The notes beneath the pieces are model-generated. The model searched no databases. It was not told the DNA's origin and saw nothing but the letters and a program-made list of their open reading frames with translations. From positions 372,001 to 436,000 of the forward strand of contig NW_021832829.1 in NCBI RefSeq assembly GCF_006345805.1: a stretch of 64,000 nt of DNA, written 5' to 3'. This DNA comes from Octopus sinensis (Eukaryota). Position 1 is the stretch's first letter; every line of letters begins with the position of its first letter. Both the position numbers and the translations under genes were made by a program. Positions 801 to 63,065 of this stretch are shown in pieces.

Positions 801-1553
801 AGTAACTTGGAAAATTACGCAACCAGATATTACTAAATATATAGAAAATACAAAAATCGGGATGTACAACAAAATTGAAAAGCAACTCCAAAAAATAGTA
901 AAGCAAAAAGATGAGACAAAAATGTTTATCGCTATGAGACTGCTAAACAAAAAAAGAAGCAAAACACAATCAAAGTCTGGAAGCAAAACACACGGGAACT
1001 GCCGTCATTGACAATAAAAGTAAAGCAGAGGCTATATCTGAGCTTTAATACAAAATAGTTAACTGGAAGGATGAATCAGGATACAAACTAGGAACACTAA
1101 GATCGCCAATAAACACTTATGAAGTATTGGATCCAACAAAGAACTCAAAACCGGGAGGTCTGGGGGAAAAGATAACACCCCACCTGACTAGTAAAATCTG
1201 TGCCAATGAAGCTTCCAGAAACTATTGCAGACATCCTGAACAAACATTTAAAAAGAACACCCCATTAGACCTCGGCAAAAGATGGCTAATTCAACTGCAG
1301 AAACCGGAAAACAGAAAGGGCCTTATCAAACTGGCAACACTAGAGAAGATAAAAACCAAGGTGGAAAATTTTCTGTCGCTAGGGCAAAGTGTGTTTAGAG
1401 CTGACAGATCTACTCCTGATGTCATCTGACACACAGATGGACCGCTGTCTTATGTTAAAAATACTAATTGAGTAACTAACCCAATCTATAAGCGTGAATG
1501 TTAAAGACAGATATTTATAGTGAAAAATAAAAAAACGAGATCAAAAATAAAAG

Positions 1554-4179: not shown

Positions 4180-4899
4180 TTTTTTTTTTGATGTCAGTGA
4201 CTATTTATTAAAAATATGGAAAGCTAAATTAATCAGAAATTAATCGGCCAGCAAGCCGAATGGAACAGCTGTTCCCACGCACAACGGCCAACAGGATCCT
4301 TTGGATTATGAATGTAAATTCCCTAGGATCCTTGGAGCGTAAAGAACAGAGGTGGCCAAGTTTCTTTAGATGATCAACTGTCATTGTGCCAAAGACGCAC
4401 GAAGTCTCAACAACAATTGGCCAAAACCAAAAGCCGTCTAACAAGCCCTGGTATTTTTCGGATTTTGTATGTTCAGCCCTATTAGCACGGGACCCGGGCA
4501 GAGAGGCGGATTCGTTGATGGCCGACTTAGAGAAGGAATCAACACACGTGGCATCCCAAACTAGTGGTTTACCAGCGTCGAAAGCGAACAACGTCGAGCC
4601 ATCAGGCCTTTTTCCATCACCACGGTCAAGACCGATTGACTCAAGGACAGAAGGATACCCTGCCTTTTCGAGGGCATGGAGAATGATCTTGTTAAGAGCC
4701 GAATGACGAGGTATGCGACCTGCGCTTTTCTTGCAGGAAAGGGCATGGAGCCCGTATGTGTCCATCGTTGATCCACACCGGCAGGGGTGGGGATTACAAA
4801 TCGGTAGTCCGAGACGAAGGCATATTCCAAAACGGAGGGCATCGGAGTCGAGGCAGGTATCCAAATGGGTCGTGGGAAGGCAGTTAAGCCAGGAGCTAC
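4180..4899 (-). mobile_element. CRE-clade retrotransposon 3' fragment (CCHC plus REL endonuclease) with A-tail
   Basis: ORF 4229-4864 contains CRCG...HALSC...RH, GKRPDG, WDATCVD and VRGN. A10 tail at 4180-4189. Confidence 0.92.
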
Positions 4900-7009
4900 T
4901 TAAATATGTTTACAAAAAAAATAAATTAGAATAATGCTATATAAAGACATAAACATTGGTGAGCAATTTTTTTGACGACCACTGTAATAATTTAGATAAA
5001 AATAATGAGGCATTGTTTGTCGAAGATGAACTTAATGGTAAATTTACGATGTATTTATTTTTAGAAACGAATAATAAAATTTTTAATTTCACTCCTCCAG
5101 ACATGAATTCATATTATTTTAAAAGAATGAATAAAAAGATGGGAGTACACAGGTCAAAATATGATTTTGAAATAGAGAATGAGGTATAATTAAATAATAA
5201 CAGTTTAGGTTCGAATCATAAAAGATTGTGGGACGAATCCGTCTTTGAATCTACACAGAATTAAATCCCCACATGAAGAAAAGAGAAAAGTAAGAAATAT
5301 AATGTCTAATAACAGATTAATGGTTAGTTGTCTTTCCTAACATTTAGATCGAATTACGAAATGAAACCAAGATAGTTACTATGAATAGAGTTAAAAAATG
5401 TTAAGTTTTTAGAATTTTTAGCAATTATCTTGAGTCAGTAATTAGTGCCAAACTATGTAGGTCACCCTGTCAACAATGAAGGTCGCTCTGGTCGCCAGCG
5501 TAGTTCGCGACATAATGACCTCATCATGTAAACATTGCGGTTTAGGCTTCGCTGTTCATTCATTTCTGGTCAACGACTTACAGAAAGTTTGGACTATCAA
5601 TAGGAAAAGAAAGAAATAAACTGTTATTAACAGATATTCACACATTTACACTGAAATTAGAATATACAAGTGCAATGACCGCCGATGAAAATGAAAGCAG
5701 CGACACAAGAGTGAAGACGGGGGCCCACCGACCACTCAGCTGCAGCACAACATATGGCAATACAACAACATGCACGAGGGTCAAACCAACAGACTACAAA
5801 AACATAAAAAACCAGAATAACCATCAAATGTATAAGGTTTGAACTATCCAGCTGATAAAATGACGAAATGTCCAGGCCAGCCAAAGCAGAAAGAAACGAG
5901 ATGGCACTGTGAATAAAATATACCAGCCTACATTGCAATGTGATATATATGGTGAAAAAAAGGAAACAGAAAAATAACAATTCCCGGAATTGCCAACTTC
6001 AGAATAACAGCCAGTGAAAAATTGTGGATCTGCAGAGGAACTGGAATCCAAAAACCACAAAAAACCCAAAGAAAAGACGAAAGAAGCCAAGACCGGAAGT
6101 AGTAGCACAACCAGTTGGGACCGATGATAGTGCAACACATAATTTAAGTAATACGGCATCCAATAGGTAAACAAAATCTTGTTTACGTTCACAGACACCA
6201 ACATGAACACAGTAATTAAAGCACGTGGATTGAATAGAGAAAATCGTTCCAGGATGACTTTATTTCCGCGCATGATGACATCATCCTCAACCCACAGCCA
6301 AGAAACGCCCCAAAGCAAGACTAACAGACCAAATAGCAGAACGACACTTTCTGGGGGAAGATAAGAGTAGGTCTACCAGTAAAAATGCACATTTTACAAT
6401 TATTGCGAGGGACTGAGCCAAGAAATCGGATAGTCTAATAAGCCATCGTTTTTTGCATAGTTCTATAACCAGAATGTTCACTTATTTTTAACCATTTTTG
6501 TCATACCTGCTCCGACCAGAAGCGAATAAGATAAACAGAGAACTCCCCGCAGTAGTAATGGGAGTTCTAACAGGACAAGGAGCACATTTATTAGTCCTAT
6601 ACAGACTATTGACAACTTCATTGTAAGGGATACCGAGAAGGACCAATTAATTGAAATGGAGCCTGTCTAATTAACATAATAGTTAAAAATATGCCTGAAT
6701 AACTAAATATCCAAAATATGAGCAAAAGTATAGTATCCCAGCTTGTGGAAGTTTGTTCAAGTCATGTCCGACGTAGTTGAATTCGTTTATTGTCAGGAAA
6801 TAAAAAGAATAACAGACTATTAGATTCGTCAAAAAGTAAGCGGAGACAGGGCTTTCATACGACATCAATATTATTTAAAATTTGTTTAATTAATTTTAAT
6901 AAGAATAAATTAAAAAATACTATAAATTTTGATAAATTTCAATCTAACAAAATAGGTATTCTGTCCCAATATTCTCAGCCGGTTTACTCTTGAATAATTC
7001 GTCAGTTTG

Positions 7010-7305
7010 ACTCGGTACTTGTCTACGACTCAGAATCCCTCTTTGCCACCTCATCCGTCCAAATGCGGACAGTTGATAGACTCCGATGGTCTCCACACTC
7101 TTTAGTGCCGGCTAAGCGCTGGACGTACCCCAATACAGTCCAGTTGGAACAGCGTCGTCAAATGAGATCTTAATTCCGGGGCTTTCGTTCGGTTTTAGAG
7201 CCCACTGGTCTTTATCGTGGAGACGGCAAGCGTCCCGATGAAATGACGGTCTTCCTATTCTGCGAAGAGAAGTGTCTCGTATGAGACGTAACCTGTTCTT
7301 ACAAT
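7010..7305 (+). mobile_element. Degenerate CRE REL fragment
   Basis: PHPSKCGQLIDSDGLHTL*CRLSAGR...LEPTGLYRGDGKRPDEMT...DVTCS, with stops and frameshifts. Confidence 0.8.
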
Positions 7306-7339
7306 ATTTATAGTATAGATATTATGAAAAGTGAGGAGG

Positions 7340-7717
7340 TTTCCGGCATTTACCGACTGAAATTGATTGATTTGCAAAATGATGTTAAACTGAAAAGTTT
7401 GTTAGCAACATTTCAATAATTGACTTTTATTCGAGAATTCCAGAGAACCGATCTAGTCAATAATGCAAAAAAAAATTTAGCGATATTTGGATCAACATAT
7501 GTCTGCGAATCGACATTTAGTAAACTTGTCCGAATTAAAACAAAGTTTCGCAGCAGATTGACTGATACTCATCTATGTGATTTTTTACGTACTTCAACTA
7601 GTAGAATTAAACCTAATTTTGATTATTTAGTTAATAAATAATTGTTAAAAATTATTTGCGGTCCCTGTAATTTTTTTTAATTTGCGGCCCCTGAGTAAAG
7701 AAGCTTGAGAATCACTG
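7340..7717 (+). mobile_element. hAT (Buster/SPIN-like) transposon 3' end
   Basis: FGSTYVCESTFSKL...KTKFRSRLTD dimerisation motif (ORF 7420-7641). Terminus ...gcttgagaatcactg resembles a CAGTG-type hAT TIR. Confidence 0.85.
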
Positions 7718-7999
7718 ATCTATACTATAGATATATTTTATAGCAACCCTGCGAGGTAACTCGTTTGCTATTCGCGGTGTAGCCACTGGCGAATCCTAAT
7801 TGTTTTTCCCTTCCATACTTTTGAATAATAAACTTAATAACTACAAAAATAAGTCATTTTCTAAACAGATTTCTCCGTTTTTATTGATTTTGCCAGGGGT
7901 CGCATTCAAAATGATTTTTAAATTATTATTTTATTGATCCGTTAATTTATATAAATTTTAAATTAATTGTTAAATTTGCGGTCCCATTACTCTTTAGTG

Positions 8000-9044
8000 A
8001 TGCCTAAACAAGATAAACGACTAACTTTCGTACAAAATTTCATCTGCGGGGGAAATGCAGGAGTTGTGTGCAGAACTGTCTGCTCGCCTCTGGACGTTGT
8101 GAAAACTCTGCAACAAGTAGGGACTGCCGATGCGGCCTCCGGAATGACTCGGACGTTTATAAACCAATACAAAAACGAAGGAATAAAAGCATTTTATAAA
8201 GGCAATTTAATCGCCTGTCTCAGAGGCTTTCCTTATTACGCAATCCAATTTGCAGTTTATGAAAGATCAAAGCAAATCCTGAGTCAAAATAACTCAAAGG
8301 TCGGCTCTTTGTTGGTCTCAGTCAGTGGAGCACTCTCCGGAGTTTCTGCCGTGATTTTAACATATCCTCTTGATATGGTCAAGACAAGACTCACAGCACA
8401 GCATGCTGACCTGAGCAGGGCAAAATATAAAGGAATTTTGGACGCTTTCAAAGTCATTTCCCGAGAAGAGGGAATATTTGCTATTTACAAGGGTTTGGGG
8501 ACATCAGTAATTGGTCCTCGTTGCCTATTTATTTCCAGGAGTCATTCCTTTCACTGCGGCCACCTTTTACGCCTATGAAAATGTCAAAATGCTGTATGGA
8601 AGCACGGAGAATCGCAGCCCTGTCTATAATTTTGTTGATGGTTGTTTGGCGGGAGCGTTTGCTCAGACTGTGAGTTTCCCGTTTGATACGATCCGGAAAA
8701 AACTTCAGGTTTTTGATGTTTTTTACAGAAGGCTCAAAGTTCCTTCATCACGGGAGGAGGGACTGATGTGGAATTCAACGGAATGGTTGATGGGTTCAGA
8801 CAGACTATTCGCAGATATGGAATTCTTGGGTTGTGGAAGGGCACATTGGCCAATCTTGTCAAGGTACTGTCGATTTTTGAGTTTTTAGGTCGTGCCTTAT
8901 GCAGGAGTAATGTTTTTGACTTTTGAGGCGACGAAGCGTCTGTTTTTGTATTCGAATGGATATACTCAGAGCCCTTTCAGAGAGGATCCAATTCCACATG
9001 TTGACCAATCTCTTTCCATTTATGATAAGAGGAGGGCTTCTTAG
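8000..9044 (+). CDS. SLC25A43: Mitochondrial carrier, SLC25A43-like, 4 exons
   Basis: Three PxDxxKxR carrier repeats. Introns 8514-8538 (25 nt), 8709-8731 (23 nt; 20 nt if the upstream AG is used) and 8864-8888 (25 nt) join the ORFs. N-terminal RLTF.QNF.CGG and C-terminal NGYT.SP...VDQSL are typical of SLC25A43. Confidence 0.85.
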
Positions 9045-9286: not shown

Positions 9287-10945
9287 TTTTTTTTTTTTTT
9301 TTTTTTATGTGGTAACTACAATGTAAATACAGTCAAATTAATTAATAGAGAATTAATGTCGTGAACTTGAGGGTTAGTCCGACGACGAAGCACTGCGGAT
9401 AGAGAGGCAGTTCCCGCGAAGAATTGCAACCGAGATGCGCTGGAAAAGCCAGCTCGTCTCCCTCGGTCATTTGTATTCTGTGAGATTCTTCCTCCCACAA
9501 CCCGTAACAGATTTTCTACCTTCTTTCCAACCACACCGGAGGTCTCAAAGGCTAGGGGGACAAACTCAACGACGTTCGGAAGCACAGCGTACTTCGTCAA
9601 CTTCCTTTCTTCTGCCAGCGCACATGCGTAGCCTGGTGTACTGGCTGTTCCTGTGAGCACAGTATCTGAAAAGGAGTCGACGCAAGTTACATCCCAAACA
9701 AGAGACCTTCCTCCTCTAAAGGGGAATATAGTCAGGACGCTTTCCGTCACTGCGGCAGAGCCCAATAGGTTCAAGGGTCGATGGGAATCCCGCAGAATCC
9801 AAAGCCCTTTTCACCACTTCATTGAGGAGGACGTGGCGGGGAAATCGGCCAGCACTCCTCCTACAGGACAATGCGTGTAAACCGTTCGAAGGAATCAAAA
9901 AACCACAGCGACAACGGTGAGGTTGGCAGATTTCAAGTCCAAGTCGAAGACACACTCCGATACGTATAGTTTCGTCTTCCATAAGCAGACCATTGGACGC
10001 CAACGGAAGTGCGTTTAGCCAGTCTCCTGAGTGAGGCTGACAGGCACAGTTCAAAGAAGCCAGTTCCAACTGTCGACTCGCGTGCGAAGACTCTCCAACA
10101 GGTGTGTGCACCAGATGACATCCCAACTCTTCTGTATTGAAGGAATCTCCGGAAGGCCGAACTGGAATGGCAAGAATTCCCGACACAATTGCGGAATAAC
10201 ACGACGTGACATTATTTTGGCAGCAAGGCGTCTGAAGACATTACCACTGCAATTGGCCGTAAACCGCCATCACTCTTACGGAGAGCTGTTAGATTGGCCG
10301 AAAATAGGAGATCCCTCGCAACAGCAGGGATGGCGCCCGTGACATTCGAGAGCAAAGCCGATTGATCGAATCCAGGAGAGCACGGCCCGAGTCGGCAGTC
10401 AAAGGAGATATAAGGTCCCTCAGATGTATGGGCTTTATTCTGTCAATGCCTCCACTGCTGCTGAGCGGGAAGGACGACAAAGCAGCTGAGACCTCGGAGT
10501 TAGTCGTATGGGGACATCGGCCGAGCACGGATTGGACGTTAATCGAAGATTTTCAGGGGCACTAGGATGCTTGTGGCACAATTCCAAGTACACGGCCTCT
10601 GAAGGAGGCGCCACGGGCGTGTTTGAAGAGATCACCCGGACTGCCCCACTGACGTCCCCTTGCATAAGTTTACTTTTAACTGCCCGTATCATGAAAGAAC
10701 AATCCGTGTCGTGCGTAGAGGCACAGGACTCCACGTTCTGGGGTTTGGAAATAAGAGGCCAACAGACAGCCAGTCCGGGTCAAAATCTGAATGAACAAAA
10801 CAGGAACAAGCGTCTTTAATCCGCTGGGCTGGTGATACCTGTCGGCCATCCCGCAATCGAACGGTACGAGACCCCAAGCATAAGGGAGCAAAGCAGAAGA
10901 GTTTAAACCAAGCTTCATGAGAATCGGACGACAGTGCATCGTATA
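9287..10945 (-). mobile_element. CRE retrotransposon with internal deletion of the RT core
   Basis: N-terminal region (AWFKLFCFAP, GDVSGAVR, NLTALRK) joins near 10150 directly to the post-RT QKSWD..W region. CCHC/REL follows, then a long poly-A at 9287-9306. Confidence 0.88.
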
Positions 10946-11038: not shown

Positions 11039-12832
11039 ATGAGTGAAGTCGGAAGCATAACCGAAAAGGCGCCTGTGAGTTCCTATGAAGTTTATCGGTC
11101 GGAAGCGGAGGATTTGTACAGAAAGGCAATGTATCAAAAGGCCATTGCTTCTTTTACAAATGTAACTAATTCAACATTGGCACTCAAATAGTCACTAGAA
11201 CTAAAACCTGATGATCCATACTGCCTTATTTCCCGCGCTCAATGCTACCTGAAAGATGGACAGAATGATTTGGCATTGAAGGACACGGATTTAGTCCTAC
11301 AGACAACTAGTGACTTTCATAAAGTTTTTCCCTGTCCTCCCAGCTTAGGCGCTCTATATGAAAGCAGAATGCTATTATCAAATTGGAAACTTTGAAATGG
11401 CATTGGTTTACTATCATAGAGGACATAATCTGCGACCAGAAGTTGAGGAATTCTCTTTGGGAATCAAGAAGGCGTCAGAGGCTATAGAAAACAGTGTCGG
11501 AGGTTACCACGTGCCTTCTAAGCACTATAGTCCCTGATGCAATATCATTAAAAACAGTGTCTGGAGGAGATTATTACTCTCAGGATAAGTTTAATGTAAG
11601 AAACTGATATAATTTTAAGAAACTTCCTGGTTTAAACAATCTGAAATCCGCAGATAAACGCAAAATCAGATACGAGAATCCCAGACTGTCTAAACAGTTA
11701 TTAGAAGAACTTTACGACGATAAAGAATATCTGGAAGGGTTGTTGCGGGACGGGGGTGGTCTATTTTGTATATAAAGCAGACATTTGTTCACGGAACACA
11801 GAAAGTGGAGTTGAAATTCTCAACACTGTCACCGCCTGCCTTCGATATCTCACCGAACGAGCAGATTTTTGGTTGCAACATAAACCGATTTATGCCCGCG
11901 AACGAGAAAGAAAAATGTTTATGCGTGGAAGAAATGATTCCTGCAAGGAAAAAGATCTCGATCTTATAATTAGCAACAAAATTTCAAAACTAACAAAACG
12001 TGACAATTTCAAAAAAAATAGTTTAGAGTTTGAAAAAAGCAAATACCAGCAAGTTCAGAAATCGGCAGAGGACTTGCTAAGTTTTGTCGATTCCTACCCT
12101 CGGGAGTCAATTAAAGACAAAACAAATACCTTTTCCGCTATTTACAACCTGATTGCAAGTTCTGCGTTTGAGCTAAGAAATTATGATTGTGCGGAGGAAA
12201 ATTACACTCAAATGTTAAAGTGGCTTGAAAATAGGTATTTATGGATTTTTGAACATATAAAAAGTGAGATGAAGGACTCACAGTCGCGTATACTTGAATG
12301 CCTTGTTATATGTCAAATGATGGCAGGTCAATTTGCTAATGCACTCAAAAAGTTATTTTATAGTTTGTAACTTTTCAGTCTAACAAAACTGCTAAAACTT
12401 GACAGGAAAAAGGAGTCTGAAACTGTCATACAAGAGATTTGGGCAATCCACGAAAGTTCACGCTGTCACTACGAGCTTGGAAATTTTCAAGAAGCCGAAA
12501 ATTTTGCAAAAAAATCATTTGAGCTCGCCAAATCAATATACAACGGCGAATGGATGCTCAACAGCGCAGTTATTCTAGGCAAAATTTCTGGTATTTTTAC
12601 GCTTTCAGTTAATCTAGAAAAAAATGATAATTATAGAGACGCTCTTGAATATTACGAATCGGCATTTAATCTGTCTAATGCTTTAAACGACAGTACGGGA
12701 GCAAAACTCATATCGGAAGCCATAAAGACATTACAAGACGCTCGTTTAGAGATCAAAATTGACCATACAGATCAACACAATCCGATAGATCCACAGAATA
12801 ACAAAGAGGAGGTAGAAAATGAAGATAACTAG
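11039..12832 (+). CDS. ODAD4: Outer dynein arm docking TPR protein (TTC25), at least 7 exons
   Basis: Introns 11162-11191 (30), 11324-11348 (25), 11503-11530 (28), 11596-11619 (24), 11756-11777/80 (22/25) and about 12351-12377 (27) give FEMALVYYHRGHNLRPE, ELYDDKEYLE and FWLQHKPIYAR, diagnostic of TTC25. Confidence 0.92.
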
Positions 12833-15564: not shown

Positions 15565-15755
15565 CCATTTTCAGTTCAAGTTTGACATTTTTTATACCAA
15601 TTTTGAAAATGCGACATTCAATTTTGATATTTTTTGCATCAATTTTGACAATGCAATAAGCAATATTGACATTTTTTAAATCGGTTTTGACAATGCGATA
15701 TTCAAATTTGACAATGCGGCATTCAATTTTGACACTTTTTACATCAATTTTGACT
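15565..15755. repeat. 21-bp tandem repeat arm (left)
   Basis: Units of type ttttgacaatgcaacattcaa / ttttgacattttttacatcaa. Confidence 0.9.
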
Positions 15756-17004
15756 TTTGCCGATTTGTCATTTATTTTATATTTTCTGATTCGCCGTCCC
15801 TGTACGAATTTTATGTCAAGAACAAATTCAAGAGTGTCAGAAGCTACAAGAAGAGCACTTATAAATAAGGATGAAGAGGGCGGTGATTATATACAGCTTG
15901 CTCGCGATCTTGGTGTCAAGAGGACAACAGCTATAGCCATTGTAAAAGTGGAAATCCGTATCTTTGTAAATGTGGAGGTAGAAGGGATGCTACGATAAAA
16001 CTTACGGATGATGATATGAATTTGATAATTGAAACAATTGAGAATAATCCATCGATAACATTGAAGGAATTACGAAAATTGGTAAATAATAAAGTTTGTA
16101 TTGCGACAATATATAACCGACTTGATGGGCGATTGACTACCTACAAAATGCTGCGAAGAGAACCAATTTCTAGGAATAGTCCGGAAAATATAGAAAAAAG
16201 AAAAATATTTTCATTGGATTATCAACGTAATACAAATAGAAAAATACATTTGGACGAAACAAATTTTAATCTTTTTACGTTAAAAAAATTCGGCCGATCC
16301 TTTACAGGATCACGTGCAATAGTTCCAGTAAGAGCAAGCAAAGGAGTGAATCTTAACGTTATTTTGGCAATTGATGACAATAGAACAATTGTGAGATTTG
16401 AATCACACATTGGATCTATAAAATCGAAATTTTGCAATTTTATGACGGCATTATCGGACAGTTTAGCTGGAGAGGAAATTATTATTTATATGGATAATGC
16501 TCTAATCCATAAAAAACAAGGAAATTTTGAAGGCGTGAGAGTAGAACATACAATTCGAAGATTTGATGCACCATATTCTCCGCAGCTAAATCCATGCGAA
16601 GGCTGTTTTTCGATCATCAAGGCTGAGATTAAGACATATTCATCCAATCACAATAATCCTCATAACGATGTTCATGCAGCAGGAAATGGAACGCTGACGG
16701 AATTTCGAGCACTATTATTACAAAATTCCTTAGAATATTCTATGACAAATCTAACTCGCGAGAAAATACGGAATTTTTACAGAAATGCAGAAAAAATTAT
16801 TGCACGATTGGGATTCCATTAACCTGACCTGATTAATAAATTGTCTTTATTAACTCTCATCTTGATTTAGCCGCATAGAAAAGTCCTTATGTGTGTCCGT
16901 TATAAAAATATTTGTCAAAATTGATCTAAAAAATGTCAAAATTGAATATCGCATTGTCAAAACCGATGTAAAAAATGTCAATATTGCTTATTGCATTGTC
17001 AAAA

Positions 17005-19129
17005 TTTTTTTTTTGTGAAAACTATTAACTAAAAAGAGTTCTTGTCTAGTTATTCTCTAATGCAGTTATTTTGAACTTCATAAGATGGCCTGGCAGTTCC
17101 CTCGGACGATCGCCAACGAGACTCTTTGGAAAAGATGACGAGTCTCGTTGGGATCCTTGTTTCGTCTGGCAATCTTCGACCCCAGCCGACGAAGGAAAGA
17201 AAGCGATTCTGGGCCGATGACCCCGGATGTCTCCACGGCTACTGGCGCAAAAATGTGGTTTCTAGCCAGGTACGAGTATTTTCTTGTTTTTGTGACCTCC
17301 GCATGTCTTGCCGCTGAGCCGGGCTCAGCAACTGAAGAGATCAGGTTATGCGGGGAGAATGTGTCGGAGCATGTCGCGTCCCAGATGAGGCATTTCCCGT
17401 GATCGAAGGGAAATGTTGTCATGCCATCTGGGCGCTTTCCATCCCCGCGATCCAACCCGACTGGTTCCAGCACATTAGGGAATCCCGCAGATGCCAGCGC
17501 GCGGCTCACCACATCATTAAGCCCAGAGTGTCGAGGGAAACGTCCAGCGCTACGCCGGCAGGATAGCGGGTGCAGTCCTAGGGTGTCAATCATCTGGCCG
17601 CAGCGGCATTGATGTTCACGGCAGATGTTTAATCCCAAGCGCAGAGAGACTGCGATGCGGAGGCATTCGTTATTCAGTAATGTCCCGACTGACACCATTG
17701 GGATAGCTGTCAGCCAGGCTCCCGAATACTTTTGGGACCCAGCAAGCAGGCAGCTCAGGCGGGGTTGATCAAGTTTACACTTGAGGAGGAAAAACTTGTG
17801 GTCCGAATAAATTCCGTCCCACTGCCGCTGTTTGGTCGAATCATCAGGAGCTTTGAGACCATTAGCGGACCAGCATCTGACAGCCGAAGAGAACTCAGTG
17901 TCCACGGGGGATTCAATAGCGGATTGGAGAATCTCGTGGACCAGAGAGCTGGTGGCGTGAACAGAGGAAAGAAATGCTGGCAGGGAAAGATCGGCGGCAG
18001 AGCGCACACCGATGCCACCGTGGTTAACCGGGAGGATTGCCTGCTCCCAGCCGAGGTCATCAAACGGGGCATTACAAATTGCTTCGAGGCATGCCCTGAG
18101 GGCACGGTCGAAGCTGAAGAGGCCCACGTGATTTGTAAAACAGGGGGCACTTCGGAGGGTGAACATTAGCTTGGGGATCGCGAAGCAATTCTTCAATAGA
18201 AATAAAGCCGCATGGGAATCAATTGTCGTGAGCTTACTGGACATAGATATGAGATTCGAGGTTTTTTCGGACAGAGTTTGATCCACTCCAGTGTTGAATA
18301 TGGGGGAGCCCAAAATCTTGAGATTCGATGGCGTGGTGACTTGAATGTTCGATAAAAGCAAGTTGAAGGAACGAAGAATATCGGAAAAATGGTGCGGGTC
18401 GTAACTGATGTTTATGATTTCAGATTTATTAGAATTGACTTCGAGACCAATGGCGTGCAATGAAGGGATTATGATTCTCAGGTCATCAAGAACGGATTCA
18501 GATGTAACACCTATGGTGGCGTCGTCCAAGTACCAAACGTTGAATTTGGATGATACATTCCTGGCAACGTTATCCACAGCCAGAGCGAAAAGGAGAGGGC
18601 CCAAAGGGTCACCTTGCTGTACTCCATTACTAGACGGGATTGTCTGATTACCAGCGACAAGGAGGCTGGGCTGGCCGTAGGCCAACGCGACGAGACGGGA
18701 GATTGCTGGACAGCGACGGGTAGCGGATTCGAAAAAAGTGTCATGACGCACACAGTTGAAAGCATTAGCCAAGTCTATCTTGATAAGAAGACAAGGCTTG
18801 TCTTGCCGATCTTGAGAGGCAATCACAAACTTCCTCGTGGCGTGGACTGCTGCTTCGCAGCCACCCCGAACTCCTACGCCGAGTTGTATTGGGCGTAATT
18901 CGGACCCCAGCAATTTGATGGCTTGTCTGCAAGCTACCTTCGACGCCAGACGGCGGAAGAGGCAACCCACGGCGATGGAACGGACACCGCTTTCCTTTTT
19001 CCTCAGGGCAGTGAGATTAGCGGCAAAAAATAGGTCGCGGGCATACTCGGAGATTTCTCCGTTCAAAATTCGGTTCGTAAGAGCCGTTAGGGACGATAGG
19101 AGGTGCTGACCGGCTTCACAAGTTTGGGG
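17005..19129 (-). mobile_element. CRE retrotransposon, 5'-truncated, with intact RT-CCHC-REL ORF
   Basis: 662-aa ORF 17078-19066 with LRPIQLGVG, DLANAFN, GVQQGDPLGPLLF, WYLDD, CRCG..HPLSC..RH, GKRPDG and WDATC. A10 tail at 17005-17014. Confidence 0.95.
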
Positions 19130-19157
19130 AAATATTTAGCAGGTTTGCCGCTTTCAA

Positions 19158-19363
19158 AATTGAATGTTGCATTGTCAAAATTGATCTAAAAAATGTCAAA
19201 ATTGAATATCGCATTGTCAAAACCGATGTAAAAAATGTCAATATTGATTATTGCATTGTCAAAATTGAATGTTGCATTGTCAAAATTGAATGTTGCATTG
19301 TCAAAATTGAATGTCGCATTTTCAAAATTGGTATAAAAAGTGTCAAACTTGAACTGAAAATGG
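19158..19363. repeat. 21-bp tandem repeat arm (right, inverted)
   Basis: Units attgaatgttgcattgtcaaa. Ends ...cttgaactgaaaatgg, the reverse complement of 15565 onward. Confidence 0.9.
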
Positions 19364-25899: not shown

Positions 25900-26530
25900 C
25901 GCATATCTTCTCGTCGGTGGGAAGCTCGGTTTGGTTTGAGGCTGCCCAATTCTCCATCTATTTAACGACAGTGGGACGAGATTTGTGTCAAGAAACTTTC
26001 GAAGACCTGGCCTCTGTTTTCAATCAACACCGAATCGCTTGCTTATCTGAGCTCGTTCCCAAAACAAGGGTGTTTGGTTAAAGGCTTTCGCTCTCTTTTC
26101 AATCGGGAATAGTGGACAACGATTGCTTAAGGATCGCATTCTCCCTCCTTGTCTGGGAAACCGTTGACGAGTACGGTTTGTACCCTCTCGCTTGCCGTCG
26201 GAGTGCTGGTCGTGTCCCTCGCCACAGTGAACAAACGCAATCATTCAGAAAGCCCTCGCTTCTGCGGGTGTCCCGTCAATCCTCAAACCGGTTGGGCTGG
26301 ATAGAGAAGACGATAAACGTCCAGAAAACATGACCACCTTCCCTTACGAGCAGGGAAATCTTTTATTTGGGGCTCCACCTGCTCAGACACGTACTCGTGC
26401 TGAAATCTTACCCTGTCTGCTGTCGATCCTGGGCACGCTTCGAGCCCGACCGAGGATCGCAAGATTCTCAAGTACGCAAGACTCGAATTCGCTTATTTTT
26501 ACTCCAATTGCTTTGAGATCTTCGGTGTTG
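25900..26530 (+). mobile_element. Degenerate CRE 3' fragment
   Basis: NDCLRIA, YPLACRRSAGRVPRH, KRPENMT, TCSDT and FTPIA motifs. Confidence 0.8.
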
Positions 26531-26760
26531 ACTATCGGCCCCATTTTTGACAGGGCAGAAACAATTTTAGATAAATCACCCAAGACCACATCAGCAGGCC
26601 CCTTAATAGTGGCATTGTCGAGGTACCAGAAGTTTAAAGGTGTCTTAACATTAAAAGCCACCTCGTCGATTGACAGAGCAAATAGTAAGGGTCCGAAAGG
26701 GTCACCTTGGGGGACTCCAGTCCGGGAGCGGACAGTGTATTTGTCAAAGACACGCGATCT
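26530..26760 (-). mobile_element. CRE RT-core fragment in opposite orientation
   Basis: GVPQGDPFGPLLFALSID...WYLDNATI. Confidence 0.8.
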
Positions 26761-27431
26761 TTCGGTGAGCCAGGCTTATGATCTTATGCGTACGCCGCAA
26801 GCACGATTTCAACATATAATCCTTCCTCAGAAATGCCGGAACGATTTGTATATTTCTTTAACCAGAACCTCAAATATTGCTGGGGCACAGGTATTGCAGT
26901 GAATCGATTGCAAATAGATACTAGTACAGTTGCCCTTCCTACACGCCTCTATGCAGTAGTAGAATTTCGTCTCACAATTGGAAGACTTAACGTTACTTGT
27001 TTAAACTAGCATTTAAGCTTAGTCTGAGTAATCATATCATTGACTGGGTGAATTATGAGATCCCTACACCAGATTAATAAATTCTATTTTCTCGATAGTT
27101 GCTAGGATGTATTTCAAAAGAGCTAATGTGCCATCAAAATTCGTTTTGAAATTGTTTCGTTTAATTAATTATCTTGACGTTTTTTCTGTTTTCTTGGAAT
27201 AAAATCAACCTATCTACCTTTGCTGCAACGCCTGTTTTAATCGTTTTTTGTTCCACGAATTTGATTACTGAAACAAGTGGATTTCACAGCCAGCTCGAGT
27301 TTGATCTGGAGAAAGAAGATAGATCGTTTAAAGTGTCATGGGCAATGCAATACCTATTTTCTTTCTAAAAATAATCCATTTAATTGACTGTGATCATATA
27401 ATTTAAAAAAACAATAAAAATATATAATATC

Positions 27432-33829: not shown

Positions 33830-33950
33830 TCATTCACATCAACAATAGTATTCTTTAGACGTTGGAACAAAATAGAGTGCGAGGACTGTTCCTTCGCTTT
33901 CTGGAACATTCTTCGTGTTCCAAGTTGATTATTAGTAACCAGGCAAAATG
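33830..33950 (-). mobile_element. R4-like RT micro-fragment
   Basis: NQLGTRRMFQKAKEQ matches NQLGTRRDCQGAKEQ of the 48125-48733 ORF. Confidence 0.55.
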
Positions 33951-35318
33951 AACATAGATTGGTTGAACACTTCCAATCCGCAGTGGCCCGCCTCAGAGCA
34001 ACCCTGCCTGGCGCGAACGTTACCCCAATCGATGACGTCACCTTTCTCGGGGGATCCCTGTCCGACACGAAGCTCCGATGCGTGCTTTCTGCCAAAACCG
34101 AATACTTCCAAAGACTTTCAACAAACCTATCTATCTTGGACTCGCACACTGCCTTTTTCCTCCTGAAGAACAGCATTCATCTGCCGAAACTCATTTTCAC
34201 CCTCAGGAGCAATCCCTGCTTCCTGCATATGGACCTACTCGTTGCATACGACGCAATCCTGAAAAAGACTGCGGAATCCGTCCTCAATGTCCACCTCGAT
34301 GGCCCGGGATGGGCCCAATGCTCGCTCCCACTGAGATTCGGAGGTGCGGGAATCCGCACTGCATCCGATTTGGCACTTCTGGCATATCTATCCTCCCTTT
34401 CGATGTGCAACAACCTGGCCTCTGAGATCCTACTCAAATCTTTCGGATCTTGCCTGGACGGTACTTTTTCGGATGGGCTTACTACTGGGATCGCTCCTTT
34501 GAGAGGCCCGAAGATTTCTCCTCCCAACGTGCCTGGGACTCTATTGCATGCCGAGCGCGTGTGTCTGAGCTCTCTGCAACCCTTGATCAACACCGCCTGG
34601 CATGCCTTCGTGCGGCATCCGCCCCTCACTCTGGCAGCTGGCTGAATGCTCTTCCTCTCTACAGCATCGGGACGTTGCTAGACGATGCTGCCATACGCAT
34701 CGGAGTGGCTCACCGTCTCGGCCTGGATGTTTGTGCAAAACACCGCTGCAGATGCGGTGAGGACGTTGACGAAAAGGGACTGCACCCACTTTCCTTAGAG
34801 AAGCGCAGGCAGGGAACACAGACACAAGGCCCTCAATTAAATCGTGAAGGCCGGTCTCGAATTGGCGGGCCATTCGTGCCTCCTCGAACCGGTCGGACTC
34901 GATCGGGGAGATGGCAAAAGGCCTGACGGGATGACAATATTCCCGTACTCGTCGGGGAAGGCCCTCGTATGGGATGTTACCGTTGTGGATACCGTTGAGG
35001 ATCCATTCTTCCGCCGCAAACCCTTGTTCGGCTGCAAACCACGCCGAAAAGATCAAAATACAAAAATATTCTTCGCTCGCGGACCGCTACCGCGTTACGG
35101 CAATCGCCCTTGGGACCGCTGGAGCTGCGGGAAAGGAGACTGACTCGTTCCTCAACGAGGTCGGGCAGTCCATTGGGAGGAGGCTCAAGGACACGAGAGA
35201 GGGCCTCTGGTTCCGCCAGCGCATCGGCCTGGCCATTGTTCGGGGCACCACACTGCGTCCTCGCCGCTGGGACTTAACGATTTTTGTTGTCAATTAAAAT
35301 CTATCTTTATAAAAAAAA
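33950..35318 (+). mobile_element. CRE retrotransposon 3' half, frameshifted
   Basis: LDSHTAFFLLKNS, LPLRFGGAGIR, HSGSWLNALP, GKRPDG, WDVTVVD and WFRQRIGLAIVRG. A-run near 35310. Confidence 0.9.
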
Positions 35319-35489
35319 GATTGGTTGTTAGAAAGGTTTCTGTTCAGCTTGTCAAAAACAGGCATGGTCATAACAACAAGATAATTAAAACTGAATATAA
35401 AATTATTAATATTCATTTTTATTATTTTTAGGCGGTCTACCTACGAATTTCTTATTAATAAATTATTTTTGTTTCTATTTCCGTTGGAA

Positions 35490-36304
35490 ATGGGTGATTT
35501 TAGGTTGTTATTTATAATTATTTTTAAAGAAACCAATCTAAGGTATTTATTGGCGATCTTCCTCGTGATGCTTCTGAAAGCGAAATCCAGTCTGCATTCA
35601 ATAAATATGGAACAGTAAGAAATGTATGGGTGGCTCGAAACCCACCGGGATTTGCATTTGTTGAATTTGATGACCCTCGTGATGCCGATGACGCTATTCG
35701 CAAATTAGACGGATCGTGAGTGCCCTCTCTAATCTCTAGATCAATATGTGGAGTGCGTGTTCGTGTAGAGCATTCAACGGGTCGATCCAACAAGGGTGGT
35801 TCAAATGGTCGAATGGACAGAAAAGCATTCAATCCGAATGATCGTTGTTATAAATGCAATGAAAGAGGCCACTATGCGTACGACTGTGACAGATCAGGGT
35901 ACTAACCTTGCGCAGTGGTCACTAGTCACATTAGCTTATTTTCAGTAGCGTATTAGAACTAGTAGGCTGTTATTCTAGTATCGCCGATCATCGACGACTA
36001 CTCTTCTGATGAGTTTAATTCTTTGACAGGTCTCCGCGGCGTCGGTCTAATTCTCGTGGAAGAAGTCCAGACCGCAGGGGGCGACTAAGGCGATCGAGGT
36101 TGCCATCTTTATTTATTTGTAGATCTGACAGTAGAAGGAGAGGCCGTGGTCGATCTTACAGTGATACTTCTTCATCTGGTTCGTATCGTCGGCGCCATAG
36201 ATCTTCTCGTCGTCGTCGATCTCCTGAGAGCAGGTTTTGTGCCTTTTCATTCCAGTCGTTCGAGGCGGTCTTCTTCAAGCAGGTCTCCTCGTGGGCGTTA
36301 TTGA
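35490..36304 (+). CDS. SRSF7: SR splicing factor, SRSF7 (9G8)-like: RRM, zinc knuckle and RS domain
   Basis: [46 protein letters not shown] and an RS tail. Introns of 26, 24, 131, 24 and 22 nt give one continuous frame. Confidence 0.9.
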
Positions 36305-37399
36305 TTTGTTCTTTCTTTTGTCTGCTTTCTTTCTAATAATGCTTCTGTCCTCTTCGATTATTCACTTCTTACTTCCTCTATATTATTGTAACTTATTTTT
36401 TCGCGGTTTTAGTTACCCCAGCTTCGGTAACTTGTATGTACCCGGCGTTCATTAACCATCCACGCATAAATGCTGTAGAGTTTTGGCGATTTCTATTCAC
36501 TGTTCAATAACTGGATTATTTGAGCAATTTGCTGAGACTAAAGTCTGTACAATGAAGTGCATTTTTGTGGATGTGGGTTTTCTAGATTATCGAATTTAGT
36601 CGATTGCTCGTACTGTGATAAAGTTTTACTTTTTTTTAATTTTTTTGTTCTAGTTTTTGCGGATATTGGGGATCTTTTTAGGTTTTCTGGAAGTTGGCAG
36701 CGTTTTATGTTCATGTAAAGATTTTGTGAAAAGTGAAATTGTCCAGTATATATTTTCCCTCTTGTGTAACTTGAGATTGTTTGAGAGAACATTTGAAAGT
36801 GCTGAGGAATCAAAGTGTATATTATGCTGTGTTGGTAAATAGTTTAAAGATTTGTGTCTGTATAATTATGTCGGTGGAATGGGGGTTCTCATGATGTCGC
36901 GCTATTGTTTTCAAATTGAAAATTTCTTTGACACCCATTTATAAATGAAAAACGTCTTTGAATTTTGTGTTGCTCAGATTTAGCTTCGTTGTGATATTGA
37001 GAATCCTTGTCTTGTACAAGAAAAAAAGATTTTGAAAATTTTGCAAGTTTGATAAAGAATTTTATTATTCAGAATTTTATTCCAGCAAGACCTCGATACT
37101 TTGGGCTCAAATTAGAAGTACTAATTTATCCGATGAAAAAGTTTGATGAATAGAATCTCAAAGCGTGTGGCACAAACGGGACCTTAGTTAATTTACATCC
37201 TTTGGATATGTGAGCGTGTTTTTAATAACAATATATCATTGTCCAGCTGAGTTCTCGAGTATCTGCTAATAATTTCTTTGATCCTGGGTTTTTTATTTAA
37301 CCCAAGAATCACTAACAGTTAATTAGAGTAATTAATTAGGTAATTCCAATAATCTTCAAGATCTTTATCAGCTTTTCCCGATGTTAGACTCTGGACCTA

Positions 37400-41760: not shown

Positions 41761-41840
41761 GTTAATGTGTCCAACAATGTATTGAAATGATTAATTTAAA
41801 TAATAAATATAAGTCATATTAAATTAATATTAACTTTAAA
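41761..41840. promoter_or_regulatory. 80-bp AT-rich bidirectional intergenic spacer between the ECD and MOCS3 start codons
   Basis: ECD ATG at 41760 (-) and MOCS3 ATG at 41841 (+). Confidence 0.6.
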
Positions 41841-43138
41841 ATGGATCATGTTCGTTACGGTCGCCAGTTGATACTCCCAGATTTCGGGATTTCAAGTAAG
41901 ATTTGTTATTTTATTCAAATTAGAACAAAGGTCTTTGCGCAATGCGAAAATGTTAATTGTGGGAGTCGGAGGTCTCGGGTGCCCGGCCGCCCTTCACCTC
42001 GTTTCGTCTGGCGTGGGTAATTGCTTTGAATGATTCAGGAACCATTGGATTGATTGACTTTGACTGTGTGTCTCTCTCAAATCTCCCCCGACAGACTCTT
42101 TTCTCAGAAGACCAAGTCGGGAATGCCAAAGTAATTTGTGCCAGAGATCGGCTTGCTTTGTTTGAGTCTCGTCATTTAATTTTTTAGGATAAACTCGGAG
42201 GCAGAGATCGTCATATTCAAGGAGGCCTTCAGTACTGAGAACGCTTCTCGTCTTGTCCCGCAGTTCGATGTTGTTCTGGATTGTACTGACACTGTGGCCA
42301 CTCGATATTTGCTGAATGACGCCTGCGTGCTATTCGGTAGGCCTCTCGTTTCCGCTTCTGCTCTTGGATTTGAAGGACAACTTTCTGTCTATAACAACGG
42401 CGGTCCCTGCTATCGTTGTCTCCACCCAGTTCCCTCCTCTTTGTCTTCGGGTACGTGCGCTGAGAACGGAATATTTCCTACTATAACAGGTGTTATGGGA
42501 ACCTTACAGGCCACAGAAGCCATTAAAGTCGTTTCTCATTGCGGAGGTTTCTTGTTTACTCTACTATTAGAGTCCCTGACTGGATTCATGCTTACTTATG
42601 ACGGGCTCTCCTCTGAATTCAAAAAATATAAACTCCGAAGGCGTCAGAAGAACTGTCTTGTTTGCGGAGACATGCCATCGATCACCGAATTGCGAGAATG
42701 CGTTTTTGAGACTGTAGGATTATGTTTTTCATTCTCAGACTTGTGTGTATTCCCGAGGGATATCAGTTGAGGTATCCAGTTCTGCATCATTATCTCAAGG
42801 ACTATTTTAAATTACGGGACGCTGGGGTCAGACATGTCCTTTTAGACGTGAGGAATCCTGTAGAACTTGAGATATGTAGTTTACCATGTGGGAATTTGAT
42901 AAATATCTCCCATTCGACTATATATTTGCCTACTGTGCGTTCGGATTTATTGACTGAGCTGAACGATTTGGGAGATGTGCCTGTATATGTCATTTGTAAG
43001 AGAGGAGTTGACTCCGAAAGAGTTACCTCTTATTTGTCATCCCTTGAGGAGTTCAAAAGATTTGAATTTTCCAGTATCAGAGGTGGGTTGCTTTCCTGGT
43101 ATCGTTTGATTGATCCTGGTTTTACTATTTATTTCTAA
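41841..43138 (+). CDS. MOCS3: Adenylyltransferase/sulfurtransferase (UBA4): ThiF plus rhodanese domains
   Basis: [46 protein letters not shown] and rhodanese LLDVR...CKRGVDS...GGL..W. Introns 22-28 nt. Confidence 0.92.
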
Positions 43139-55240: not shown

Positions 55241-55304
55241 TGTGTGTCTGTCTGTCTGTCTGTCTGTGTGTCTGTCTGTGTGTCTGTCTGTCTGTCTGTG
55301 TGTG
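55241..55304. repeat. (TGTC/TG)n microsatellite in the Helitron 5' end
   Basis: Directly visible. Confidence 0.95.
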
Positions 55305-55326: not shown

Positions 55327-56408
55327 TACGATGTCCTCGACTTACATGATGAGGTCCTTAAAACCTTCCCCCCAAAAAAAATTAAAAAAAATTTTTCTGC
55401 GTTTTGGTCAAAATGAACAACTACGATGTCCTCGACTTACATGATGAGGTCCTTAAAACCTTCCCCCCCAAAAAAAATTAAAAAAAAATTTTCTGCATTT
55501 TGGTTAAAATGAACAACTACGATGTCCTCGACTTACATGATGAGGTCCTTAAAACCTTCCCCCCCAAAAAAATTAAAAAAAATTTTCTGCATTTTGGTTA
55601 AAATGAACAACTACAATGTCCTCGACTTACATGATGAAGTCCTTAAAACCTTCCCCCCAAAAAAATTAAAAAAAATTTTCTGCATTTTGGTTAAAATGAA
55701 CAACTACAATGTCCTCGACTTACATGATGAAGTCCTTAAAACCTTCCCCCCCAAAAAAATTAAAAAAAAATTTTCTGCATTTTGGTTAAAATGAACAACT
55801 ACAATGTCCTCGACTTACATGATGAAGTCCTTAAAACCTTCCCCCCCAAAAAAATTAAAAAAAATTTTCTGCATTTTGGTTAAAATGAACAACTACAATG
55901 TCCTCGACTTACATGATGAAGTCCTTAAAACCTTCCCCCCAAAAAAATTAAAAAAAAATTTTCTGCATTTTGGTTAAAATGAACAACTACAATGTCCTCG
56001 ACTTACATGATGAAGTCCTTAAAACCTTCCCCCCCAAAAAAATTAAAAAAAAATTTTCTGCATTTTGGTTAAAATGAACAACTACAATGTCCTCGACTTA
56101 CATGATGAAGTCCTTAAAACCTTCCCCCCAAAAAAATTAAAAAAAAATTTTCTGCATTTTGTTAAAATGAACAACTACAATGTCCTCAACTTACATGATG
56201 AAGTCCTTAAAACCTTCCCCCCCAAAAAAAATTAAAAAAAAATTTTCTGCATTTTGGTTAAAATGAACAACTACAATGTCCTCGACTTACATGATGAAGT
56301 CCTTAAAACCTTTCCCTTAAAAAATCAAAAAATTATTTTCTGCATTTTGATTAAAATGAACAACGCGAATGTCCTCGACATTCATGATGAGGTCCATTAA
56401 AACCTTCA
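55327..56408. repeat. Minisatellite with an about 94-bp unit, 11 full copies plus 1 partial
   Basis: Unit starts at 55327, 55422, 55518, 55612, 55705, 55800, 55894, 55988, 56083, 56176, 56272 and 56365. Confidence 0.97.
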
Positions 56409-60764: not shown

Positions 60765-62860
60765 AAAAAATCTAGCTATTAAGTACTGGCTCGCAGAATT
60801 GAAAGACAATTCCCGCGTAAAACAGCCAGCGAGATCCTCTGAATAAGGAATATAAATTTCCTGGGATCTCGGGAGCGATAGTTGCACAGACGGCCAAGTT
60901 TCTTAAGGTGAGCAAACGTCTTGGCCCCCAAAACATAGGAAGTCTCGACGGCAATTGTTCAAAACCTAAATCGGTCGCGCAAATCCTTGTATTTCGTTAA
61001 TTTCGCGAATTCGGCCTTCTCGGCCGACGAACCGGGGCGACAAGCCGTGGAATTCAAGGCTTCCTTGGCGAAAGAGTCGGCACACATGACGTCCCAAACG
61101 GAGTGAATCCTTATCGAGAACAGTATCCAAAAGCGGAGAAAAAAGTACATTCAGCCAGGAGCCTGAGTATGGCTGACAGGCGGAACGGAAACAAGACAGT
61201 CTGTGTTGGTCGAGTTTTGTCCCAATCTCGCTGAGAAAAGATATCGGAAGGGACTTCAGAGAAATTTTGTTTCCAAAGTGCAAGGGTCGAATCGATATCA
61301 GAGTCCAACGATGATTCAGTAGTTTTTTCCAGAATCTTTTGGACAAGGAGATATGATCCAGACGCCGAAAAAAGAAAGGCAGGAAGAGCCAAATCAATAC
61401 TGGAACGGAGGCCCAGACCCCCGTGACTCAAGGAAGTTTAGCCTGACACCAGGCAATATCGTCGAAATGCACATTAAGAATTTTCTCCGCAGAACTCGAA
61501 CGAATTTATCATATGATTCCAGCACTTGCGTGACATAAAAACAAGGAGAGCTCCTCAGGATATAAATAATTTTTGGGATCAAAAGATAATTCTTGCGGAT
61601 GTAGAATGAAGGATGAGGATCAATGATAGAAAGTTTTTCACAAAGAGATGCGATAAGATTTTTTTGGCGAGGAGGATTCGTGTAGCTGAGTCGGCGAGAA
61701 TCGGTGACCCCAGAATTTCCAGATCAGACAGAAGTGTCTGTCTCAACTCAGGAAGGAGTCCACAGAAAAGAGAGAAGAAGTTCTTAAACAGGGATGGCTC
61801 AACAGAGAAATTGACAATCTCAGACTTGCTGGAATTAATGTCGGATAACGCCGAAATTAGAATGGCCAGGTCCTTCAACAAAACACCAGGTGGACCGCCC
61901 AGGGTGCAATCGTCGAGATACCAGAGATTAAGGAGTGATTCATTAACCCGGGCAATGGGATCCACGGCAAGAGCGAAAAGTAATGGTCCCAAAGGATCAC
62001 CCTGTTGGACGCCACAGGACGAAGAAATGAAAAAACCGCCGGCGATTAAAAGTGATGGAAGCGAGTACGAAAGTGAGATAAAAGGAAGCAAGTGTGGAAC
62101 ACGGTCTTGACAGACCTCCAACAAATAGCCACGGTCCAGAGAATTGAAAGCATTAGTTACATCCAGTTTCAATAAGGCAAGGGGAATATTGGAACGAATA
62201 GAAGCGTGAATAAAACAACGACAGGCATAGACAAAAGACTCGCAGCCGCCAGGAACACCCACACCCAAATGAATGGGCTGCAGTTGCTCGCCAATAGAAG
62301 GGATAACGGACTTGCAACAGATTTTCGCAAATAAACGACGAAAGACATTTCCAACAGGAATAGGCCTGATACCACCATCTTTCTTGCCCAAAGCTGTAAG
62401 ATTCGCGGAAAAGAACAGAATTCTAGCATGGTCAGAAATTTTGCCGCTTAGAAATAAATTGCACAAGTTAGTGCAAGCATTCAAGAGGTGATTCCCGGTA
62501 TCACCAGTTGCGGAAATTAAGTCTCTCAAATGAATAGGGCGGAGACCGTCGATACCTTTGCTACTGTTACCCCTAAAAAAGTTTAAGACGTCCAGAAGTT
62601 GTTTGGAAGAAACAGAAAAGGGAAAACAGGAGGAATGGGCCATATCAAAGGTTACTGGTTTTCTAATAGGGTGCTTTTCCTTGAGAATGCGAGCAACATC
62701 GGGGGTGATTGTACGGACAGAATCGGAAGATGACAAGAGACGAACAGCCGCGCTGACATCATGCGACATTAGACAGGAGTTAATCAGAGACCGTAAACGT
62801 TTAGAAGCGTCCTTCGACGAGAGCATAGCGGTAGATTTTAAATGGGAGAGAAACGGAAGA
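60765..62860 (-). mobile_element. CRE retrotransposon, RT present, CCHC/REL core deleted, frameshifted
   Basis: ORF 61579-62826 with NLTALGKK, LDVTNAFN, GVQQGDPLGP and WYLDD. DSLR joins directly to VWDVMCAD. Confidence 0.92.
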
Positions 62861-62889
62861 TAAAGAGTGAGAAATACGCTAAAATTGGA

Positions 62890-63065
62890 AATGACAGAGT
62901 GTTTGTCCCCTTGACTGTTGAGACGTCAGGAATACAAGGAACCTTCTACTCGGAGCCTACTCCTGCGGATTGGCTCACTAATGGAAAAGGTTACCGGCGA
63001 TCCGTCTAAGCACCGGTATTTAACCGAACGAATATCCATAGCCATAGTCAGAGGCAATGACCAGT
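62890..63065 (+). mobile_element. CRE 3' fragment
   Basis: FVPLTVETSG...HRYLTERISIAIVRGN. Confidence 0.8.

Follow-up and report, generated by a model that had tools for sequence, protein, structure and literature searches.

A 131-nt intron behind the zinc-knuckle exon of a dicyemid-type SRSF7 gene is an extreme local size outlier and a candidate switch for unproductive splicing

The window analyzed here, a 64,000-nt stretch of contig NW_021832829.1 (positions 372,001 to 436,000 of the forward strand; Octopus sinensis assembly GCF_006345805.1), contains an SRSF7-type serine/arginine-rich (SR) protein gene on its forward strand (35490–36304, start to stop codon) whose third intron, a GT...AG intron of 131 nt (35899–36029), is an extreme local size outlier among introns of about 25 nt. 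This intron occupies the position of the intron at which vertebrate and molluscan SRSF7 genes produce truncating transcripts. Most likely it resisted shrinkage to the ~25-nt norm because it would still be working as an unproductive-splicing switch. That intron 3 may be under regulated unproductive splicing of SRSF7 is a serious possibility, which in our judgement falls only a little short of being probable.

The gene was recognized from its stop-free spliced translation, its Pfam domains and its closest matches. Six coding exons, once joined, give a coding sequence (CDS) of 588 nt without internal stops and a protein of 195 amino acids (aa). Exon 1 (35490–35503) and exon 6 (36256–36304) were delimited by the spliced translation. 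Exon 2 (35530–35715, 186 nt) encodes the RRM and ends in phase 2 after ...KLDG, an end common to all mapped orthologues, while exon 3 (35740–35898, 159 nt) encodes the linker and a CCHC zinc knuckle with the spacing C-X2-C-X4-H-X4-C (35846–35887) and ends, also in phase 2, after ...DCDRSG. The RS domain begins in exon 4 (36030–36098, 69 nt; 75 nt in the mammalian counterpart) and continues through exon 5 (36123–36233), whose length of 111 nt is also that of mammalian SRSF7 exon 5. At the protein level, Pfam places RRM_1 at the N-terminus (residues 10–72, E 1.7e-18) and zf-CCHC, with a score exceeding the gathering score, between the RRM and the RS domain (residues 102–117, E 2.2e-5); the RS tail (residues 121–195) consists mostly of R and S. 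The closest relatives are animal SRSF7 proteins and, among the top 120 matches, most of those named in their source are SRSF7 or SRSF7-like. A search of 5.8 billion proteins returned none more than 70% identical to the window protein, and a degenerate pattern for its specific knuckle peptide had 0 matches in metagenome contigs. By its RRM, CCHC knuckle, RS domain, relatives and exon-intron structure, all of which were tested, the gene is of the SRSF7/9G8 type.

With the conserved KV(Y/F)(V/I)G motif as reference, intron 1 (35504–35529, 26 nt, phase 2) is displaced by 5 nt from the position of mammalian intron 1 (phase 1), and this offset reflects either intron sliding or an imperfect model of the first exon. 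An intron-less start of the gene is ruled out by an in-frame TAA at 35524–35526.

The introns of the gene measure, in order, 26, 24, 131, 24 and 22 nt. The third was examined by exhaustive enumeration of the GT/AG pairs around the exon 3/4 junction, keeping the CCHC knuckle and the reading frame. The shortest single excision that preserves both, and the smallest that gives a productive mRNA, is exactly 35899–36029, and no two-intron solution with each intron of 45 nt or less was in frame and stop-free among all GT/AG pairs. This confirms that the 131-nt intron is real, i.e. that other splice patterns yield no productive mRNA. As a case that would refute its reading, the first-pass annotation, made from the sequence of the window, had named a coding micro-exon with a short intron on either side, and this arrangement is excluded by the enumeration. 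Internal GT and AG dinucleotides are present, and five in-frame, stop-free combinations can be written; but all five need at least one intron of 58–80 nt and insert peptides (e.g. HISLFSVA) with no counterpart in any orthologue, and we consider the micro-exon hardly credible. An intron of the U12 type, removed by the minor spliceosome, was also rejected, as the 5' end (GTACTAAC) fits RTATCCTT only at the first three positions.

The 24 other curated introns of the window have a mean length of 24.9 ± 2.5 nt (range 20–31), which places intron 3 42 SD higher and upholds the earlier observation of a 131-nt intron after the zinc-knuckle exon in a setting of short host introns. The set comes from six genes (SRSF7, mitochondrial carrier, MOCS3, CDK11, septin and TPR protein), plus one SGT1/ecdysoneless-like intron, and its curation by open reading frame (ORF) junctions favours short introns over long ones. 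At least two junctions outside the set could not be assigned an intron of typical size, one in MOCS3 (~42700–42780, +) and one in NELF-B (21223–21157, -), and additional long introns of the window may lie there. The MOCS3 junction, between the ThiF and rhodanese parts, has candidate introns of 20–56 nt. The NELF-B (COBRA1)-like gene, too divergent for its exons to be placed by Pfam coordinates, may hold an intron of ~70–140 nt. One GT..AG segment of 24 nt within the CDK11-like gene (GTATGTGTGTGTTTTTTATTCAAG, 52696–52673, -) is in frame and stop-free, and its retention would add 8 residues; it is almost certainly an intron, because its removal restores ...PELLLGIK/KYSTKVDVW.... This case shows that mini-introns can sit unseen within ORFs.

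The short introns are one of several features that the window shares with dicyemid genomes. The window has ~38% GC, carries many ORF fragments of retrotransposons and DNA transposons, and its cellular genes are cut by ~25-nt GT..AG introns. In the genome of Dicyema japonicum, GC content is 36.7%, repeats account for 49% and introns average 38 bp (PMC6736024); in Dicyema sp. the median intron is 27 bp and two thirds are below 30 bp (PMC6543705); and 16 introns of another Dicyema species, established by genomic/cDNA sequencing, measure 26.2 ± 1.9 nt (PMC2222250). Intron size (~25 nt), reduced splice motifs (GT..AG only), GC content (~37–38%) and high repeat content are thus alike in the two, and we infer that the window gene is dicyemid-type, an assignment made by intron size, GC and repeats and not by sequence match. 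Myxobolid myxozoans are the only other animals with such short introns (PMC13644364). The genome papers on Dicyema and on myxozoans differ from the present analysis in that they describe the distributions of intron length, not which genes keep long introns or why.

Mapping of SRSF7 proteins onto genomic loci placed the post-knuckle intron in phase 2 in every species mapped. Exons 2–5 measure 186/159/69/111 nt in the window versus 181/177/75/111 nt in the shrew (Sorex), and the phase-2 introns that follow CDS exons 2, 3, 4 and 5 in Sorex have identical phases in the window. The matching phase 2, together with the near-equal sizes of the flanking exons, identifies intron 3 of the window as the orthologue of SRSF7 intron 3. 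The human gene encodes its zinc knuckle in exon 3 and carries a poison cassette exon in intron 3, and retention of intron 3 leads to a stop (PMC10533491). Phase, exon sizes and the place of human intron 3 after the zinc-knuckle exon (PMC10533491) therefore agree with the first-pass annotation, which had located the long intron at the SRSF7 poison-exon intron.

The length of the post-knuckle intron relative to its neighbours is also comparable across lineages. It measures 131 nt in the window (others 26, 24, 24 and 22 nt), 892 nt in the shrew (others 347, 134, 80, 1154, 466 and 885 nt), 20951 and 10789 nt in two octopus assemblies (others 1910 and 6985 nt in the one, 1257 and 2119 nt in the other), 344 nt in the tapeworm Hymenolepis (other 38 nt), 2687 nt in a priapulid (others 220 and 176 nt), 2481 nt in the beetle Onthophagus (other 186 nt), 1757 nt in the barnacle Amphibalanus (others 295 and 265 nt) and 1323 nt in the snail Bulinus (others 6145 and 1422 nt). 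It is the longest intron of the gene in six of the eight lineages, the window included, and its ratio to the neighbouring introns is typically 5 to 13 (5.5 in the window). The Hymenolepis locus belongs to a tapeworm with short introns, and there an intron of 38 nt (501–538) after the RRM exon stands against one of 344 nt (749–1092) after the zinc-knuckle exon, within which no hidden RS exon was found.

Molluscan genes show what the orthologous intron can contain. Exactly at the post-knuckle junction, the annotated X2 isoforms of Biomphalaria glabrata and Ostrea edulis, as well as an ENA protein, depart from the full-length form and continue into short non-RS tails followed by a stop. The Biomphalaria tail (R/IKLRSAFHPD-stop) is encoded in Bulinus by a cassette placed ~310 nt into the orthologous intron behind a good acceptor, TTTGCAG/A. 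In Bulinus truncatus this cassette spans 7175–7208 of the locus, within the intron 6865–8187, and reads A/ATA AAA CTA AGA TCT GCA TTA CAT CCC GAT TAG (IKLRSALHPD-stop), so that 9 of the 10 tail residues and the stop are conserved with Biomphalaria. The cassette opens with AGATCTGCAT, which recalls the opening of the exon that follows in the productive form (ATCTGCAT). The cassette is apparently a poison exon kept between the two snail genera. Its presence in the orthologous intron of molluscs means that a poison cassette at this place is not restricted to vertebrates, and its existence in the dicyemid ancestor becomes more probable a priori.

Inspection of the 131 nt in the window revealed that both their retention and splicing to an internal AG are predicted to end in a premature stop. 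An in-frame TAA lies two codons into the intron (35903–35905), and retention would give a protein of 121 aa without RS domain; with each of the 10 internal AGs, translation would end prematurely 2–21 codons past the zinc knuckle. The earlier claim of a premature stop after use of AG 35925 or AG 35978 was thus correct, and it extends to all 10 internal AGs and to retention. The AG at 35924–35925 would close an intron of canonical size (27 nt, 35899–35925) and lead to such a stop, and the early AGs at +17, +27 and +36 fall in the normal acceptor zone of the local spliceosome. The 5' segment (35899–35925) has 52% GC and 26% T, versus 32% GC and 44% T in typical mini-introns. At the opposite end, the 3' splice region (36006–36029) looks conventional, with CTGAT, a T-rich TTTAATTCTTT and GACAG, and a putative branch A at 36009 would be placed 20 nt upstream of the acceptor G. 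A tract of 34 nt free of AG and GT (35979–36012) holds GATCATCGACGACTAC (35986–36001) and GACGAC (35993–35998) and is the best candidate for a protein-binding tract, the protein being an SR protein.

The intron starts with GTACTAAC (35899–35906), in which a TACTAAC (35900–35906, +2 to +8, branch A at +7) overlaps the donor. The first-pass annotation had pointed to this branch-point-like motif, which is present (P = 0.018 in shuffles, for a motif picked post hoc); its role as the branch point of its own donor was rejected, the motif being too near the 5' splice site, and the overlap is probably coincidental.

If intron 3 acts as a switch for unproductive splicing, the productive path would join donor 35899 to the distal acceptor 36029, probably via the branch site and T-rich tract at 36006–36029. 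If the intron were retained, or spliced to one of the 10 internal AGs, the stop would instead fall 2–21 codons past the knuckle, and the unproductive mRNA would encode an RS-less fragment of RRM and knuckle (121–140 aa). The premature stop would precede the nearer of the two remaining junctions by at least 85 nt (~190 nt for the retained form), and a stop upstream of two further exon junctions would make the transcript a typical substrate of nonsense-mediated decay (NMD), or else the source of a dominant-negative fragment. The loop would be closed by SRSF7 itself which, possibly bound at the GAY-rich 35979–36012, would tip the choice between the paths and keep its own level in check. Unproductive splicing is a feature of SR genes as a class (PMC4379411). 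For the window gene, we infer all three steps, namely the making of alternative products, their degradation and the control exerted by SRSF7 over the choice; alternative splicing coupled to NMD (AS-NMD) would then select for the long-intron exception, as the first-pass annotation had proposed.

The same truncated products would serve a protein-isoform switch, in which a stable mRNA would provide an RS-less RRM and zinc-knuckle protein (121–140 aa) acting as a dominant-negative or RNA-binding-only factor. Every non-productive outcome does end 2 to 21 codons beyond an intact zinc knuckle; truncated, RNA-binding-competent SRSF7 is made from poison-exon transcripts in mammals (bioRxiv 10.64898/2026.05.22.727176), and truncated proteins of the same type occur among the mollusc annotations. 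However, no in-frame intronic ATG is available for a second 'split' ORF, since the sole ATG (36009–36011) meets a stop after five codons, and by sequence alone this switch is indistinguishable from AS-NMD. We consider it improbable.

Several observations weigh against the assignment of a regulatory role to intron 3. Stops in every frame are expected for any 131 nt of non-coding DNA with 40% GC, and the placement of the stops upstream of the exon junctions, itself a prediction, fits almost any intron of such size. The many alternative AGs noted earlier are indeed present, but their count (11 versus 7.3 expected from the window-wide AG frequency) is not significantly above chance, and neither is that of TAG (7 versus 5.2 in dinucleotide shuffles, P = 0.17). 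The cluster GATCATCGACGACTAC, said to resemble SRSF7 motifs, is found at 35986–36001, but the argument from motifs is weak, with a single GAYGAY against 0.09 in dinucleotide shuffles (P = 0.08). The GAYGAY count was likewise unenriched in the mammalian SRSF7 intron 3 used as positive control, and the failure there makes it a poor test of low power. A true cassette exon with two flanking introns of normal size was tried and rejected, as the downstream intron would measure only 17 nt or at least 52 nt; a true cassette is therefore unlikely, and use of an alternative 3' splice site or retention are left as possible modes. Set against its orthologues from six other animals, among them shrew, octopus, priapulid and tapeworm, intron 3 showed no similarity above that of shuffles, at a distance too great for the comparison to be decisive. 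The post-knuckle intron is not the longest in Bulinus (1323 versus 6145 and 1422 nt) and only the second longest in Sorex. Finally, longer introns are not rare in dicyemids according to genome-wide gene predictions, which give a mean of 38 bp (PMC6736024).

These points bear on a neutral explanation, according to which intron 3 is an outlier from the long tail of the distribution, constitutively spliced and without regulatory role, that was very long in the ancestor and whose shrinkage is unfinished. The ancestral intron was probably kilobases long and hence had furthest to shrink. The published mean of 38 bp exceeds the median of ~27 bp, about one third of predicted introns are of 30 bp or more (PMC6736024, PMC6543705), and introns of more than 100 bp without special signals are also present in the convergent myxozoan case. 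In intron 3 itself, motifs are not significantly enriched, folding gave no sign of RNA structure (z = +0.85) and similarity to orthologous introns is absent. On the other hand, the 24 other introns of the window and the 16 from another Dicyema species are all of 20–31 nt, and this uniformity indicates that other ancestrally long introns evidently shrank. The outlier is, moreover, the one intron known to be regulated in vertebrates and molluscs, a coincidence whose prior chance is that of hitting this intron within the gene (~1 in 5) times the frequency of long introns across the genome. We regard the neutral explanation, the main and a serious rival, as well possible, though on the unlikely side; if the intron is constitutive, it is an ordinary intron from the tail of the distribution.

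The length could also be due to cargo or to an artefact unrelated to SRSF7 regulation, such as a small RNA hosted by the intron, the remnant of a transposon or an error in the assembly. Intron-hosted snoRNAs commonly keep introns long, and the window is very repeat-rich. Yet Rfam gave 0 families at E up to 10 across 35300–36700, the folding of intron 3 is no better than that of shuffles (minimum free energy z = +0.85), blastn against the 64-kb window finds no second copy of the intron and nothing beyond chance matches of up to 12 nt, and the splice signals and reading frame exactly fit a real intron. An origin of this kind appears very improbable.

Under the preferred reading, that of a switch for unproductive splicing, one of the closest known systems is vertebrate SRSF7 (9G8) intron 3, where a poison cassette exon and intron retention serve autoregulation by unproductive splicing. 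The two are alike in gene family, in domain order, in intron position and phase right after the zinc-knuckle exon and in the conspicuous length of this intron within the 5' half of the gene; in both, unclean removal leads to an immediate stop and an RS-less product, as predicted in the case of the window. The vertebrate intron differs in its size (~0.9 kb or more, versus 131 nt), and the window intron has neither room for a cassette with two normal flanking introns nor sequence similarity to it. On the window side, the regulation compared is a prediction from genomic sequence. The SRSF7-like genes of molluscs are lophotrochozoan, the clade to which dicyemids are assigned, and they show truncating isoforms that leave at the orthologous junction (B. 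glabrata X2, O. edulis X2) and, in the orthologous intron of Bulinus, a stop-bearing cassette kept between two snail genera. They differ in having an intron of 1.3–21 kb with a discrete cassette ~310 nt in, whose peptide and sequence are unmatched in the window intron.

A third system is that of Drosophila Rbp1 and Rbp1-like, for which Kumar and Lopez reportedly described in 2005 a negative feedback exerted via alternative 3' splice sites that lead to unproductive mRNA. These proteins belong to the SRSF3/SRSF7-related subfamily, and the mode based on alternative 3' splice sites is the one that best suits an AG-filled intron of 131 nt, although the Drosophila proteins, unlike that of the window, have no zinc knuckle.

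Unproductive splicing of SR genes is ancient, while individual events turn over fast. To our knowledge, the age of the SRSF7 intron-3 event and its occurrence outside vertebrates are poorly documented. Taken together, the window locus and the mollusc cassette suggest that the event predates the protostome-deuterostome split, and further that it can survive a hundred-fold compaction of the intron. The switch in intron 3 would belong to an already known type of regulation, to which the extreme miniaturisation around it adds interest. If it is confirmed, a simple rule, to look for the length outliers, would help to locate regulated introns wherever animal genomes are ultra-compact, and the 131 nt would be a natural minimal SR-protein feedback element in which the true requirements could be dissected. 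A wider and more speculative proposal, which we think unlikely but worth stating, is that, in a lineage with a spliceosome tuned to ~25-nt introns, regulatory content limits how far an intron can be miniaturised: the SRSF7 intron would be kept long because length and proximal decoy AGs make its productive splicing inefficient and SR-dependent, and the long tail of the distribution would be enriched for genes of autoregulated RNA-binding proteins. If this were true, the long-tail introns of dicyemids, and perhaps of myxozoans, would point to AS-NMD circuits that go back to the bilaterian ancestor and could be found from the genome sequence alone.

The cellular genes recognized elsewhere in the window are a mitochondrial carrier (7967–9041, +), a TPR protein (11349–12829, +), NELF-B/COBRA1 (22134–20585, -), a septin (33067–31711, -), a casein kinase I with one uninterrupted ORF of 313 aa (39540–38575, -), an SGT1/ecdysoneless-like gene (40672–40058, -), MOCS3/UBA4 (41823–43135, +) and CDK11 (PITSLRE; 53669–52259, -). 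Upstream of the SRSF7 gene, a GC-rich (49%) ORF fragment of a non-LTR retrotransposon (33929–35294, +) ends ~195 nt before the start codon. Similar reverse-transcriptase or C-terminal fragments were located at 2–814 (-), 4232–4909 (-), 9319–10240 (-), 17081–19135 (-), 26231–26899 (+) and 61582–62925 (-). Arrays of 21/42-nt units (TCAAAATTGA...GCATTG) occupy 15575–15734, 16912–17006 and 19154–19353; they flank a Tc1/mariner-like transposase ORF (15887–16819) in opposite orientations, recur beside the long reverse-transcriptase ORF, and look like terminal inverted repeats made of tandem subrepeats. A 94-nt satellite at 55327–56407 comprises 11.4 copies that are 95% identical (TRF score 1904), and a (TGTC)n run (55241–55303) is placed just upstream of it.

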